Shown: in pieces, positions 4,203 through 46,373 of the stretch
Layout of the letters: the number at the start of each line of letters is the position of its first letter
Numbering within the stretch: the first letter of the stretch is position 1
DNA from: Octopus bimaculoides
Taxonomy: Eukaryota
NCBI RefSeq assembly: GCF_001194135.2
Contig: NC_068984.1
Coordinates: 101,688,065-101,739,198 of the forward strand
Direction of reading: 5' to 3'
Length of the DNA: 51,134 nt
Notes under the pieces: model-generated
What the model saw: the letters and a program-made list of their open reading frames with translations, nothing else
Databases searched by the model: none
Told to the model about the DNA's origin: nothing
Translations under genes and position numbers: made by a program

Positions 4203-4257
4203 ATGTCTTTCTCCTGTTGGTTTGGTTCTGAACATTACCGAGACCATTTCAAAGATG
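4203..4257 (+). CDS. MSRB1: MSRB1 coding exon 1: MSFSCWFGSEHYRDHFKD-G
   Basis: Matches the MsrB1 N-terminus (human MSFCSFFGGEVFQNHFEPG). Acceptor ttatag ends at 4201, ATG at 4203, phase-1 donor G|GTAAGG at 4258. Confidence 0.9.
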
Positions 4258-7906: not shown

Positions 7907-10900
7907 TCTTTTTTAGCTGTTGTATCTTAATTGTTGCCTGACTTTTAAGGTAGTATTGTTTGTTACACTGCACTTTTTCTTTTCATCTCTTGTTTTTTCT
8001 TTTTGCCTTTTTTGAAAATTTAATATCTTTTCTGGTTAGGTTTTACATCCAGATATTCAGTCTGTTTTTGTTTTCTGAAGCTAGTTCTATGGGGTTCAAT
8101 ATCACTTGGTGCTGGCACTTCAAACATATAATAGATTTCCTTTGGTATTACCCTTTGTTTTTCTGTATGTCTCATCTTTAACTGGTTAAGGTGCCTCTTA
8201 TGTTCCAAACATTATCCTTTAATTAAATACATCATGTTATCTAATCTTTTGATTACACAGCCATCCTCCCTACCTTCTTTACCATTTTTGTCATTTTTAA
8301 AATGAACTTTATCTCCTACTTTGAAATGTTTTGTAATATTTCTTGTATTTCCTTCAGATGGATTTTTTGTTTCTCCTTTATATGTATTTTTTCCTGGCAT
8401 TAATTTATCGAAGATCAATTTTATTTTATGTGCAAACATTAACTCTGCTGGTGACTTTCCTGAATTAGTATTTGGATTTGGCGTTATTTTATATACTCTC
8501 AAAAACTTTGTTAGTGCCTAATCATTATCTAGCCCATTCCTAGATTTTCTTAGAGCTCTTTTGAACATGTCAACAAATCTTTCCGCCTACCCATTTGATC
8601 TCAGGTGGTAGGGTGGGGTAAAGATGTGCTTTATGGCATGTATTTTGCAGAAATTTCTTAATTCATATCCCATAAATTGTGTTCCATTATCTAAAACTAA
8701 CGTATCTCGAACATCGTATCAAGCAAATAACTCAAATAGGAACTTTATTGTTCTTTGCTGTGCGTTTATTACATCTGCATACCTCTGGCCACTTTGTATA
8801 ACTATCCACTACGATTAGATAGTATGCGCTGTTCACTAGTCCAGCATAGTCAATATATATCTTGGACCATGGGCTCTCAGTCTCCGACCATGATTGGTAT
8901 TTTACTCATGGTGCCCTGGTTGCCAACGCACAACCTTTACGTGCTTTCACCAACTTCTCAATGTCCCTGTCTATAGTCGGCCAATATGCAAATCTCCTCA
9001 TTGAAGCTTTCATTTTGGACATTCCCGGGTGCACACAGTGGAATTATTGCAATTCTCATTTCTGTAGTACATTTGGTACTACTACTTTCTGCACGTACAT
9101 TAAGACATCGTCACAAAGTGAGAAATTATTTGAATTTGTATTTTTATTATGCTTATTTTTCAATGTTTCTTTCATTCTTGTAATGCAACCATCCTCTACA
9201 AATTTCATTTTTATATCATGCACTGTTACCGGCAGTTTCTGAATTATATTACACACAATACTTCTTCATTTTCTGACTGTAATGACACTGTCATGGTCTC
9301 TTCTAGCGGTTCCACACTCTTGGGAATTAGCCTCGATAAGCAGTCTGCATGACCAATTTTCTTTGACAGAATATACTGCATCTTAAAATTGTAGTTCAGC
9401 AGTATAGTACCCCAGCATTGTAGTCGGTTCACTCTATTGGTAGGTAATCCCTTCTTTGATCGAAAAGTTGATAGTAATGGTCTATGGTTGGTTTGTAACA
9501 AAAAACTTCTACCATGTAGAAATTTGTAAAATTTTTTTACCACAAAAATAATTGATTAGAGCCTCCTTCTCTATCTGACTATACAGCATGAACTACTGGT
9601 TTCGTATTTCCATCTTTATACTTGTGTAGCAAGACTGCTCCTATTCCATACTCCAAAGCATCAGATACTACAGCAATGTCCATTCTTGGATTGAAATATG
9701 CTAGTGACAAGTCAGAAATTAGCATTTGCTTTATGTCTTCAAATGCATTTTGGCACTTTACTGACCAATTTCATTTTACTTCTTTTTTTAGTCAATTGTT
9801 TAATGGTGCTCTCAGTTTATGTATATTTAGAATGTACTGTTGATAGTAATTTACTAGGCCAAGGAAAGCTTGTAATGTCAGTATATTCATTGGAAGAGGC
9901 ATATTCTTGATTGTGTCTGCCCTGAACGGGTTAGGACGTCTTCCATTCTTATCTATGATTTGACCTAGGTATTTGATTTTAGGCAAAAAAAATTCACACT
10001 TCTCTTCACTGAGTATGAAACTATAATCTTTAATTTTTTTAAAGACACACTTCACGTGTTCGATATGTTCATTCTGCAATTCACTTTTGATTAACACTTC
10101 ATCAAGGTAAGGAATAGCAAAGTGACAGTCTGCCAACAACGTGCCCATCACCTGTTGGAATATTGCAGGTGCTACCTTCAGTCCAAAAGATAGTCTATTG
10201 TATTTGCATAGACCTCTGTCCATGTTGACTGTTAACAGCTTTGGGTATTTTTGTTATTTTGCGTTTTTATATGAATAGTCGGAGCTGCCCTTTTCACGTA
10301 ATCCACTTTTTCAATGATTTCGTTTTTTTCCAGTCTGTCCAACTCATCATCCACTTGCTTTATTGCCACAAAAGGCACTTTCCTATTAAGCTTGAACACA
10401 GGTGTAACGTTATTATCTAATTCAAAACACGCTTCAGTCTTTGCACATAGATCTAGTTTGTCCAAGAGAAACATTTAAAAAAAATTTTCTCCTTAATTCT
10501 TTAGACGAATTATTTTTAGAGAGTCAACCATTTATGCTTTTACAATAGAGATTTATGGGGAGGCCCCATAAATCAATAATTCTAACCAATCAGTACCAAC
10601 AGATTGGTTGCATTTTTAATGACAAAGACTTTTGCCTTGCATGCTTTACCTCGAAATGTAACATTAGTCCACATTTCACCTGTATAATTTGTCGCCCATC
10701 ATGCTACAAGCAGATTTCATTGTTTTTCTCAACATAGGTTCCCTATTTTCTTCCATGTGTCCATATTTATTATTGAAATATCACTTCCAGTATCCAATTG
10801 AAGTTTAATATGTATTCTATTTATTTTTACGTGTACAAATTTTCTTATTTGGGAGTCGATTCTTGTTTCTGCTGAGAGTGTTCTAGGATTTTTAACGTTT

Positions 10901-13342: not shown

Positions 13343-13794
13343 TATTGGTTTCAAATTTTGGCACAAGGCCAGTAATGTCAGGGGAGGGGTAGTCAATTAC
13401 ATCTGCCCCAGTGCTCAACTGGAACTTATTTTATCAACCCCAAAAGGATGAAAGGCAAAGTCAACCTCAACAGAATTTGAATTCAGAATTCAGAACATAA
13501 AGGCAGACAAAATGCCTCTAAGCATTTTGCCTAATGTGCTAACAATTCTGTGAGTTTACTGCCTTAATTAATAATAATACTGATTCCAAATTTTGGCTCA
13601 AGGCCAGCAAGTTCGGGGAGGAAGTAAGTCGATTACATCAACTCCAGTGCTCAACTGGTACTTATTTTATTCACTCTGAAAGATGAAAGGCAAAGTTAAC
13701 TTCAGCAGAATTTGAACTCAGAACATAAAGTCAGATGAAATGCTGCTAAGCATTTTGCCCAGTGTGCTAATGATTCTATCAGCTTGCCACCCTA
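13343..13794 (-). mobile_element. Two head-to-tail SINE family A copies (about 13343-13566 and 13580-13794)
   Basis: Each has the full core, box-B-like GAGTTCAAATT and the tail GCCTTG(T/A)GCCAAAATTTG. Confidence 0.9.
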
Positions 13795-14205: not shown

Positions 14206-14348
14206 GTACATACAACTGTGCTGAATGCAATACTCCTTTGTTTGACAGTGTGAAAAAGTATGAACACACTTCTCCATGGCCAGCGTTTTTCAGTTTAATT
14301 CATCTAGATCTTGTCAGCAGACATCAAGAATCTCCTTCTGCAATCAAA
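14206..14348 (+). CDS. MSRB1: MSRB1 coding exon 2: (G)TYNCAECNTPLFDSVKKYEHTSPWPAFFSLIHLDLVSRHQESPSAIK
   Basis: First Zn-binding CxxC and the KY.H.SPWPAF motif of MsrB1. Acceptor catag|, phase-0 donor AAA|GTAATT, and in frame with exons 1 and 3. Confidence 0.95.
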
Positions 14349-17539: not shown

Positions 17540-17662
17540 ATTTCCTGTGCAAAATGTGGCAACAGTCTTGGACATGAATTCTTGAATGATGGACCTCAGC
17601 TTGGTAAAAATCGATACTGAATATTTAGTAGTGCCCTAAAATTTGTTCCTAGAAAGTCTTAG
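17540..17662 (+). CDS. MSRB1: MSRB1 coding exon 3: [40 protein letters not shown]; TGA 17618-17620 read as selenocysteine (Sec93)
   Basis: Second CxxC and the GHEFLNDGP motif. The TGA aligns with human Sec95 (SRFUIFSSSLKFVPK) and homology continues after it up to TAG 17660-17662. Acceptor polyT-ggcag|. Confidence 0.95.
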
Positions 17663-17669
17663 GGCACTA
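17629..17669 (+). promoter_or_regulatory. Hairpin just 3' of the Sec UGA (candidate Sec redefinition element)
   Basis: TAGTGCCCTAA (17629-17639) is the perfect reverse complement of TTAGGGCACTA (17659-17669). Function is inferred. Confidence 0.5.
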
Positions 17670-18993
17670 ATTTATGCAAGGAAGCGAGATTGAACTTCAA
17701 ATATATTTTGAGTATTCTGAAATTGAGTTGCTTACAATTCTTTAACCTCTTCTTTTTTCTTCTCTATTTGTTCTTGTAACAACTTATTAAAAGAGTAATT
17801 TATACAATCCTATTAATTTATACATAAAGCATAGTCAACTGTTCACTAATTATTCATAAATTTATGTTAGTTTTTCATTTTGGAACAAACTTGAAAATTT
17901 AGCATTGTCATTAGGATAGAATTATAGCACTGCTATGGAGCTGTTATCTTTGTATTTTTTTTAGAACGAATGAGAAAGTGTCTCCCAGAGTAATGACCAT
18001 ACTTATCATACTAGTTATTAATTTAATTATTATGTAATGTCATTTTAAAAATTCTAAATGAAGAAAATAACCCAAATGTATTGATTTTGTGTACAAATTA
18101 AATTAGTTGGGCCAGAATTTGTAACTTATTAACACTATATTTAATTTAATCATTCAAAATGCTATATCCCTAAACAGAGGATGAACTTCCAAGATTTCTT
18201 GCAGAGATTGCTGTAGTTGAAATTATGTTTTAAAGAACTGAGACTTGTTTTTATTTTAATCCACTTTTATGTGTATGTTTACATGGGTTTATCAAGGTTT
18301 TATTGTTGTTAGAAATATATATAATGTGTGTCTTTCAGAGTCCTATAATACAAAATGACAGCTTTATGTTTCATAACAGAAAATCTAAAATTTGAAAAGC
18401 AGCATAAAATATATCTTCTACATATCCTATTATACATGGCCTATCTGTGTTGTTCTTCCTTACTCTTAGTACAGAAAACTGATGATGTTTTATTCTTCAA
18501 CTTCATATCATCTAAACAGGTGTCATTGAATAGTGACTGACCGGTGTGTCTCTGTTCTTATTAATTTTTGTTTCTCATCTAATATCTCACAATAGTATTT
18601 GGTTGATGTTAACTATGTCCAAATAACTGGCTTCTTACATACTACTGTTTTAAATGTAAAGTTAACAATTATTGCTCTCCTAAATGACCAGGTAATCTTC
18701 TGATTGAAGGCTATCTTATTTTTCACTTTAGTCTTTTCCTTATGTGATTCTTTGATTCATTAAAGCATACAGTTCCATGGAATTTTCATTAGTTAGTAAA
18801 ATTCCGGCCAAAGGGAGCTTTATTTTCACTTTTCAAAATATGATTTAATGCTAACTTTATATATTCTCTGACATACCTTTGTGTTAAATAAGCAATGTTG
18901 TGTATGCATTAAAATACTCATAACTATGTTTTAAGACATCAAATCAGTAAGTTAGTAGTATCACATCATCCTTTGTACTATACACACACATAC

Positions 18994-19033
<40 letters not shown>

Positions 19034-19444
19034 TCAATTATACATTAATTTCTCTTATTGTTATTGAAGGTAACTTAACTCGTTTATATGTAACTTAAAT
19101 TTCTATTAAAAATGTTGATGTTGATCTGTAGGTAAATTATTTATATAAGTGATCTTTTAACTGAATAGATGACAAGTTGTTTCAGTATCTTTTGTATTTC
19201 AAGGATATTATAATTATATAGAATTGTTTATATTTAATTACTTTTCTTGAGGAAGATGTTAGTATTCCTGTATTGCTGTCTCAATAGCTATAACTATGGT
19301 TTAGATTATTCTTACTGCACAATCTACAATAGCATTTTTATTTTCATTACTTTTTTTTTTCTAGAAGAGACTTTAATCAGAAACCAAAATATGATTTTAT
19401 CTATCTCCTTTCAAAATATTCATTTTGAAGTTTACTCTTTGTAT

Positions 19445-19520
19445 ATTTCTGCTAGAACTCATGAAATTATGAGGCCAGAGCCATATTTGGAAAGCCTCAT
19501 TTTAGAAGTATCAGTCTAAC
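19445..19520 (+). promoter_or_regulatory. Candidate non-canonical SECIS for MSRB1
   Basis: ATGA(19461)...AGAA(19504-07) gives the tandem GA core at correct spacing around the helix ATGAGGC/GCCTCAT, with a type-II mini-stem CCA-TATT-TGG. The apical AA is replaced by CAGAG. Confidence 0.3.
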
Positions 19521-20498
19521 ATCAAAAATACAAAGAGTTAACAACAAAAAGAGTATCAGAATCACTTATCTTTGCCTCTCAAAATGATAAGTAAAATTTC
19601 AACTATACAGAATAAAACATTCTCCTTAATTTCTCGGTGAAAGCTTTCTGTAACTGGTTTTGTTTGAAATCTCCATTTTCAAACCTACTTTCACTTTCTT
19701 TTTCTCTTTATCCTTTATGTATTTTTATTTTAAGTCAGAGCATATCTACTTCAGATGTTTTCTATCAAATATTTTTATAATTCAAATTTCTATAAAAAAA
19801 AATTTTTTTAATAAACACAGTAAAATATCAAAGTTTTTATTTCCTAAACTTGGTGCCTCAATAAACTTTCACATTTTATCTTATGTTTTTTTGTTTTATT
19901 CAATTAAAAAAATATTTTTTAAACAAATAGTTTTGATTTTTTTATTGGAATTTAATGGTTACTAAAAATTATTAAAATTTTACTCTTATAATTTTTCTGT
20001 TTTCACATTTAAAATATTGAAATTTCTTCAAATAAATTCTTATTTGTTATTATTTGATACGTCCGTGTTTATTTTTCTCTTGTCTACATTTTCATTGCTT
20101 TAAATCACTTTTAACCAGTGTCACTTGAGGTACTACCAAGCTTCTCAAGATGGAACTTAGCTTACATGCACACAAAAGGACCCTGTAATGTATTTTCAGG
20201 TTACCATTTACTGAGTCTGTCTTCTGAGCCAGTTGCAAAGATGTAACCATAGGGATGTCTAGAAAACCACCAATCTATTCCTTTTATTTCATTTCATGCT
20301 CCAAATAGTCCGATACCAATATGGGAGTTTCATGTTAAAATAATAGACTCACACACACACACATTTGTGTTAATTATTTGAGATCACTGCTTGTGAATAC
20401 CAATAATGGTGGGGGAGATTAATAATTACCAGAAAGCATTGTTATCACAGATTAATAATTATATACACACTAGTTTGGTTAATATTGCAGATGTTTCT

Positions 20499-21104: not shown

Positions 21105-21205
21105 TAAACTGGTACTTATTTTATCAACCCCAAAAGGATGAAAGGCAAAGCCAACCTCAGTGGATTTTGAACTCAGAATGTAAAGACACGAAATGCCGCC
21201 AGCTC
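21105..21205 (-). mobile_element. SINE family A, partial, inverted relative to 20499-20715
   Basis: AACTGGTACTTATTTTATCAACCCC...TTGAACTCAGAATG. Confidence 0.85.
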
Positions 21206-21284: not shown

Positions 21285-21575
21285 TCAGAGGTCAGCCAGA
21301 AATCTATCCATTTCCATTTGCATTGATTCACTTAGCAAATATGTTTGAAGTGATCGAAGCTTATTGAAATCTTCTCCTTGTTCTATAAGACATTGGTTGT
21401 CTTCACTGTATCTTTGTGAGTTCATAACAATTATATTTTTAAGGTTATTCTCCACAAACTGACTTATTGAATCAATATGTGTATGATACTGACAAAATAC
21501 TTGGTAAGCTCTTCTAGCCGTGTAAGTCTGTTCTGGTAGACAAATAGTTGGTGGTAGATAACCATATGAAAAGTC
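21285..21575 (-). CDS. Uncharacterised gene, last coding exon: DFSYGYLPPTICLPEQTYTARRAYQVFCQYH...MEMDRFLADL*
   Basis: Acceptor ttttgcag|GAC, 96 open codons in AT-rich DNA, phase-0 compatible with the exon at 24263-24167, TGA stop at 21287-21285. Confidence 0.8.
   Translation of the reverse strand, partial: DFSYGYLPPTICLPEQTYTARRAYQVFCQYHTHIDSISQFVENNLKNIIVMNSQRYSEDNQCLIEQGEDFNKLRSLQTYLLSESMQMEMDRFLADL

Positions 21576-46308: not shown

Positions 46309-46373
<65 letters not shown>

Follow-up and report, generated by a model that had tools for sequence, protein, structure and literature searches.

A hairpin beside the selenocysteine UGA of octopus MsrB1 mRNA as a candidate modulator of UGA decoding

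A perfect stem that opens a few nucleotides past a selenocysteine (Sec) UGA and closes over the true stop codon could act on the decoding of the UGA, on termination at the stop, or on neither. Such a stem lies at the end of the MsrB1 gene of Octopus bimaculoides, within a stretch of 51,134 nt of contig NC_068984.1 (the window). The initial annotation of the window took it for a possible cephalopod recoding element that couples Sec insertion to termination, in an mRNA with no canonical SECIS nearby. To our knowledge, UGA-proximal elements with a known function are confined to the SELENON and SELENOS mRNAs, with predictions for a few others; an abstract by Howard and colleagues from 2005 reportedly lists Sps2, SelH, SelO and SelT besides SEPN1. 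Our literature search found no report of a Sec redefinition element (SRE) or other UGA-proximal element in MsrB1. Here we ask whether the octopus hairpin is a selected structure, how it relates to the UGA and to the stop, and what its role is most likely to be.

The octopus MsrB1 gene and its hairpin

MsrB1 exons were located by tblastn, using a vertebrate MSRB1 query, and splice sites and frame were then read from the sequence. The gene has three coding exons on the + strand of the window (Table 1). Translation of the last exon gives a Sec-type active site and a tail of 13 codons from Sec to the stop. A UniRef entry from Octopus bimaculoides (P0001) matches the 92 residues before the UGA at 100% identity, which bears out the identification of the gene as a cephalopod Sec-type MsrB1. 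The database record for octopus MsrB1 is a 92-aa product, terminating at the UGA.

Table 1. Features of the MsrB1 locus, in window coordinates
Feature	Position	Strand	Details and basis
MsrB1 coding exon 1	4203..4257	+	ATG 4203-4205, donor G/GTAAGG; tblastn, sequence reading, protein match
MsrB1 coding exon 2	14206..14348	+	acceptor AG 14204-05, donor GT 14349-50; frame fits P0001
MsrB1 last exon, coding part	17540..17662	+	ends at stop; translation, tblastn
Sec codon UGA, residue 93	17618..17620	+	frame translation
Spacer, UGA to stem, 8 nt	17621..17628	+	sequence reading, fold
5' arm TAGTGCCCTAA, codons S-S-A-L-K	17629..17639	+	inverted-repeat scan, fold
Inner helix, 4 bp (17641-44 with 17654-57), and 9-nt apical loop	17641..17657	+	RNAfold
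3' arm TTAGGGCACTA	17659..17669	+	inverted-repeat scan
SECIS, form 2	19449..19518	+	Argonauta conservation, pattern scan, covariance model R1
Likely poly(A) signal AATAAA	19611..19616	+	~93 nt past SECIS

Sequence reading and an inverted-repeat scan confirmed the hairpin as it had first been described, with a perfect 11-bp stem that begins 8 nt past the UGA and holds the stop. The two arms are perfectly complementary over 11 bp and are separated by 19 nt. The 3' arm consists of the final nucleotide of a Ser codon, the stop TAG (17660-17662) and seven UTR nucleotides, GGCACTA. RNAfold gave a minimum free energy (MFE) of -18.4 to -18.9 kcal/mol and z = -3.7, with 0-1 of 200 dinucleotide shuffles folding as stably. 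Octopus MsrB1 thus carries a stable stem-loop that starts within ~10 nt 3' of its Sec UGA, which is where an SRE is found.

The stem is also rare in its surroundings. The 51-kb window contains two perfect stems of 11 bp that have five or more G/C pairs and a loop of 3-30 nt, as against a mean of 0.05 in 100 first-order Markov resamples. When the spliced octopus mRNA was scanned, the post-UGA segment paired better with the 80 nt downstream of it than any of 380 other positions did with theirs. These counts bear on the possibility that the hairpin has no function and is a by-product of codon composition and limited cephalopod divergence. The number of such stems expected is ~40-fold below the number observed, and the octopus arms are mixed in sequence instead of being purine and pyrimidine tracts; both points argue against a by-product. 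The other stem of this class in the window, GATTTATGGGG at 10550-10574, has a 3-nt loop and lies within MsrB1 intron 1.

Conservation and pairing across MsrB1 mRNAs

Three cephalopods were compared: Octopus, the genome of Argonauta hians (L002) and a cephalopod transcript from Logan (L001). A protein search with the 46-aa last exon as query returned no match, hence no further cephalopod orthologues. MsrB1 protein identity to octopus is 85% in Argonauta and 80% in the Logan transcript. An 8-bp core of the stem, GUGCCCUA/UAGGGCAC, is unbroken and identical in all three. On the 5' side, the arm core GTGCCCTA is invariant in 3/3 cephalopods, together with every synonymous site of AGT GCC CTA. On the 3' side, GGGCAC at the stop and the start of the UTR is likewise identical in 3/3, so that 5-6 UTR bases are kept beside a UTR that further on cannot be aligned. 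Codons with 4- or 6-fold degeneracy are identical in the three cephalopods at 3/3 positions in the arm versus 2/12 elsewhere in the exon, the 12 being the other amino-acid-conserved codons of this kind in the last exon (hypergeometric p ~0.02, computed by hand). The conserved UTR bases and synonymous arm sites support the earlier view that coding constraint alone does not explain the hairpin.

The differences among the three cephalopods leave the stem intact. In Argonauta, insertion of 1 nt (an extra A) turns the stop from TAG into TAA, and the 3' arm is retained. The outermost pair, U-A in Octopus, is C-G in the Logan transcript, a compensatory change, and two inner pairs show one-sided changes in the other cephalopods with pairing unbroken. 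Compensatory evolution, the expected mark of a selected stem in relatives, was therefore found in part: both arms are kept and one pair is compensated, but column-wise covariation in the three cephalopods is not significant: 172 of 500 shuffles score equally well, and among the 15 pairs 10 are invariant and one shows a compensatory change. This last result is what a hairpin without function would also give.

A wider comparison drew on Sec-MsrB1 loci from Logan transcripts (L003-L008, L011), from the genomes of Lymnaea (L009), Pinctada (L010), the sponge Ephydatia (L053) and a bird (L054), and from a JGI metagenome scan (41 loci, L012-L052). MFE folds of the UGA to +100 placed a hairpin at the same post-UGA site in most of about 20-24 Sec-MsrB1 mRNAs, that of the sponge included. 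Across lineages the 5' arm spans the (F)S-x-x-L codons and starts ~3-12 nt past the UGA, and the arm sequences are unrelated between lineages. The arms are, for example, GCUCGAUU/AAUCGAGC in L003 and UCUUCCCU/GGGGAGGA in L006. A 13-bp stem in L025 reaches into the 3'UTR, and stems of 17-20 bp occur in L019, L011 and the sponge, where z = -4.0. The initial annotation had treated the element as a cephalopod one; with analogous hairpins in the sponge and in other eukaryotes, that restriction is not supported.

The hairpin is not universal. Folds and the positional control described below gave a weak hairpin or none in Lymnaea (a local stem of 5 bp only), L014, L024 and L037, and the bird mRNA, spliced by hand, gave z = -0.5. 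Absence in some taxa is again in keeping with a structure of no function, as are shuffle tests on single taxa, which were often non-significant. Shuffling of the downstream 100 nt taxon by taxon gave mixed p values, from 0.003 to 0.97. This test is a weak one: its fixed split missed hairpins with short loops, and purine-rich tails still pair after shuffling. Because of these two weaknesses, we let it be superseded by a cross-taxon test and a positional control.

In the cross-taxon test, the 24 nt after the UGA were paired with the downstream 80 nt in 21 taxa, one of them a cephalopod. Pairing of each 5' segment with its own downstream sequence averaged -17.2 kcal/mol versus -12.2 kcal/mol with the downstream sequences of other taxa (permutation p <= 1e-5). 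In the positional control, made within each transcript, the post-UGA site ranked in the top 10% in 11/21 taxa and in the top 5% in 7/21 (KS p = 6e-6). Pyrimidine-rich Ser/Leu codons lying opposite purine-rich Lys/Gly/Glu tails could account for some of the cross-taxon signal. The two tests each reject chance, and together with the conserved synonymous sites and UTR bases they show a stem maintained beyond coding constraint, as is expected of an SRE. We consider it improbable that the hairpin is without function, and we hold with good confidence that the octopus hairpin is a real, selected structure.

Two further observations concern the same part of the gene. An intron lies directly after FVP(K/F)(D)G in Pinctada (L010 4787-4830), the bird (L054 4013-4050), L032, L034, L042 and L045-L048; this tail-splitting intron is absent in Octopus, Argonauta and Lymnaea. 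Where the intron splits the tail, the 3' arm of any hairpin is joined only by splicing, and Pinctada and several of the metagenome loci were left out of the hairpin judgement on this account. The codon after the Sec UGA (in the region of 17621-17626 in the window) is ATA in 31/34 distinct MsrB1 mRNAs, ATT and ATC being synonymous, and ATA and the next codon often build a 10-nt palindrome, TGAATATTCA. The near-invariant ATA may be a context signal for UGA decoding at the nucleotide level.

Is the UGA or the stop the fixed point of the structure? All of the 3' arm is coding sequence in at least 9 taxa, up to 60 nt upstream of the stop, and all of it is 3'UTR in 4 taxa. It overlaps the stop in the remainder, among them L003, L026, L029 and the cephalopods with their short tail. 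The 5' arm stays beside the UGA throughout. Since the position of the 3' arm relative to the stop varies and the 5' arm is fixed, a stop inside the stem is not a conserved feature, and the fixed point of the MsrB1 hairpin is the UGA. The location of the stop within the cephalopod 3' arm is most simply an outcome of the short 13-codon tail after Sec. Coupling of Sec insertion to termination, as proposed in the initial annotation, finds no support in this pattern.

The same pattern makes it unlikely that selection has kept the structure for a task at the true stop or at the mRNA 3' end, be it in termination efficiency, stability, protein binding or a coupling to termination. The stop does lie within the 3' arm in 3/3 cephalopods and in the several other taxa just named, as such a role would have it. 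Against this stand the taxa in which the 3' arm is all coding or all 3'UTR, and the Argonauta stop, which has shifted within the arm.

A further possibility is RNA editing. UAG is a favoured ADAR context, and A-to-I editing is very frequent in coleoid cephalopods. Position is what commends this idea: A17661, within U-A-G, is part of a perfect duplex, and a UAG stop that was edited would read UGG and give an extended protein. However, for ADAR an 11+4 bp duplex is short, the site reads UAA in Argonauta, and similar hairpins occur in the sponge and other non-cephalopods. We regard an editing substrate as very improbable.

A SECIS element downstream of the hairpin

Whether the hairpin must itself direct Sec insertion depends on the rest of the mRNA. 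A SECIS lies 1.84 kb downstream, at 19449-19518. It has helix I (GCUAGA/UCUAAC; the Argonauta counterpart is GUUAGAA/UUCUAAC), an internal loop, a core made of AUGA at 19461-64 and GA at 19505-06 with an A.A pair above AUGA, and helix II, in which 19466-75 faces 19494-503 over 10 positions, 8 of them paired and two U.U. A mini-stem, CCA/UGG, is also formed. An unpaired AA (AAR) 11-12 nt after AUGA is absent from 19449-19518. The 5' part of the apical loop reads CAGAG in Octopus (loop 19476-19493), GACAG in Argonauta (L002 15675-15693), AACAG in Lymnaea and AAA or AAG in other taxa. The cephalopod SECIS has an AAA bulge at the 3' side of the mini-stem.

Conservation and searches both point to this element. 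When the downstream sequence was compared with Argonauta by blastn, a collinear conserved block appeared (19447-19553 = L002 15646-15751), in which two helix II pairs of the Argonauta SECIS have changed one-sidedly with pairing intact. A pattern scanner found the octopus SECIS once a Watson-Crick pair directly above the quartet was no longer demanded, and in Lymnaea and eight other taxa the same scanner found, past the UGA, elements of like architecture with 43-48 nt from AUGA to GA. A covariance model (R1, alignment A5) was built from nine non-cephalopod MsrB1 SECIS elements, a training set picked with the same pattern idea as the scanner, and was run on the window and 15 loci. Its single match in the window is 19449-19518 on the + strand (27.4 bits, E 3e-4), and it matched the orthologous site in Argonauta at 22.7 bits. 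Further plus-strand matches were in L015, L016, L021, L026 and L030. The L021 metagenome contig holds two tandem Sec-MsrB1 genes (UGA at 583 and 1315), each followed by its own match to R1 (723-790 and 1435-1504).

The statement that no canonical SECIS is nearby is thus not supported: an element conserved in Argonauta is matched independently by a model from other taxa. Other searches were less informative. Rfam reported no SECIS in the whole window at the gathering threshold, nor in stretches of 6 kb and 161 nt at E <= 10. An Rfam SECIS scan of four other MsrB1 mRNAs found none either, and the negative result in octopus therefore carries little weight. With a loose ATGA..AA..GA pattern, matches were no commoner than chance. 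MsrB1 SECIS elements, here and in the other MsrB1 mRNAs examined, escape the Rfam model, which is relevant to selenoprotein annotation in mollusc genomes. The AATAAA at 19611 suggests an octopus 3'UTR of ~2 kb, from 17663 to ~19635, which would put the SECIS on the MsrB1 transcript; on that footing the octopus mRNA has a 3'UTR SECIS in addition to its hairpin, as an SRE-bearing mRNA does.

With a SECIS in place, the hairpin would act beside it instead of standing in for it. In bacteria, SelB recognises the SECIS through its C-terminal domain; in eukaryotes, SBP2/eEFSec work with a distal SECIS, and eEFSec does not read a SelB-type hairpin. The octopus hairpin does sit directly after the UGA, in a position similar to that of the bacterial SECIS (PMC10778597), and could on this ground be taken for the Sec insertion signal itself, either as a bacterial-type SECIS within the ORF or as a SECIS substitute. 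However, the hairpin at 17629-17669 has neither AUGA nor GA at its stem base and no match to R1. Because it has no AUGA/GA quartet it is not a eukaryotic SECIS, and a separate conserved SECIS exists; together with the reading properties of eEFSec, this leaves an insertion signal in the hairpin extremely improbable.

Several other features were seen in the window. Two more blocks are conserved in Argonauta at 75-77% identity (21285-21341 = L002 17547-17603; 21404-21536 = L002 17738-17870), ~1.7-2 kb past the SECIS, and may represent an exon nearby or a regulatory element. An interspersed repeat, ATGAAAGGCAAAG..AACCTCAG..GAATTTGAACTCAGA, is present in at least 4 copies (2332-2371, 13448-13487, 13683-13722 and 21138-21177). 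A copy at 21108-21166 also matches many sites in the Argonauta locus, and the repeat is probably a SINE-like element common to octopods. Assembly gaps (1282 N in total) lie at ~1983-2040 and ~37000, and (TA)n microsatellites at 1753-1790, 18980-19050 and 46314-46367. Rfam matches to mir-297 and mir-1277 were rejected as spurious, being caused by the (TA)n microsatellite of the 3'UTR.

A candidate role in UGA decoding

The position of the octopus hairpin agrees with that of recoding elements in other selenoprotein mRNAs. Its 8-nt spacer equals that of SELT (SELENOT), in which a hairpin predicted by EvoFold from conservation only starts pairing 8 nt after the UGA (PMC1440920), and falls between the 6 nt of the SEPN1 stem-loop and the 9 nt of SelS SL1 (PMC3628699). 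The SELENOT hairpin differs in that all of it is coding and its sequence is deeply conserved among vertebrates, whereas MsrB1 hairpins vary in sequence by lineage. The likeness to the SEPN1/SELENON SRE is broader: both are in-frame, stable stem-loops a few nucleotides past the UGA, phylogenetically kept, with a SECIS in the distal 3'UTR. SEPN1 belongs to another gene family, however, and its SRE has no sequence similarity to the octopus hairpin, whose 3' arm crosses the stop into the 3'UTR. The function of the SEPN1 SRE was shown by mutagenesis and by patient mutations; that of the MsrB1 hairpin is predicted. The SRE promotes readthrough and Sec insertion, and mutations in it reduce SelN (PMC6844570).

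Among known elements, the SL1 or PSL stem-loop of SelS (SELENOS), 9 nt past its UGA, comes closest to a hairpin straddling the end of an ORF. The SelS stop is close to the Sec codon, and the stem-loop therefore lies in the 3'UTR. Unlike that of MsrB1, the SelS stem lies in the 3'UTR over its full length, and it masks a splice site as well. The SPUR element of SelS is a separate sequence motif, and no counterpart was seen at octopus MsrB1. The MuLV readthrough structure has a spacing of ~8 nt. Stem-loops and pseudoknots that stimulate viral stop-codon readthrough are alike in this respect, with the 3' structure ~8 nt past the leaky stop (PMC3159437). Viral readthrough uses near-cognate tRNAs, whereas decoding in octopus is by Sec-tRNA through the SECIS.

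If the hairpin acts on the UGA, in which direction would it act? The reported effect of the SelS stem-loop was positive in 2013, when SL1 raised recoding (PMC3628699), and negative in 2019, when deletion of the proximal stem-loop increased UGA recoding (PMC6844570). Because SelS SL1 gave opposite signs in two studies, the sign of the MsrB1 effect is not predictable from this precedent. A selected UGA-adjacent element with a negative action, one that lowers Sec insertion or makes it conditional (on selenium supply or a helicase, for instance), would be served by the same anatomical evidence as a stimulatory one, and the SelS deletion is a direct parallel for it. Part of that deletion effect was ascribed to SPUR being moved closer (PMC6844570, PMC3628699), the SEPN1 SRE is stimulatory, and the octopus sequence gives no hint of sign. 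We consider a negative action unlikely.

On balance we lean towards a stimulatory modulator of UGA decoding of the SRE type. The arms co-evolve across MsrB1 mRNAs, and structure, position, conservation and a separate SECIS are all present; the action on UGA decoding and its stimulatory effect we infer by analogy with known elements. The recoding element first proposed for this site thus survives in its core, with position and conservation that fit the SRE type, and without the coupling to termination, the lack of a SECIS and the restriction to cephalopods. With the UGA in the ribosomal A site, a stable stem 8 nt downstream would be placed at the mRNA entry channel. A stem there might slow or reposition the ribosome, which would in turn shift how release factor competes with eEFSec/Sec-tRNA; the Sec-tRNA would be supplied via the distal SECIS at 19449-19518.

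We further propose, tentatively and with less assurance than for the octopus hairpin itself, that MsrB1 mRNAs may carry an ancient second recoding signal from sponges to cephalopods. Such a signal would be fixed in position and free in sequence, with a near-invariant UGA-AUA and with arms that co-evolve, synonymous Ser/Ala/Leu codons on one side changing with the tail or UTR on the other. If this is true, arm co-evolution can maintain elements without sequence conservation, and screens based on alignment would therefore miss them. In that case MsrB1 would join the selenoprotein families in which Sec insertion relies on a UGA-proximal element as well as on the SECIS. If the hairpin does modulate Sec insertion, such elements would have an earlier origin and a wider distribution than a catalogue centred on vertebrates implies.
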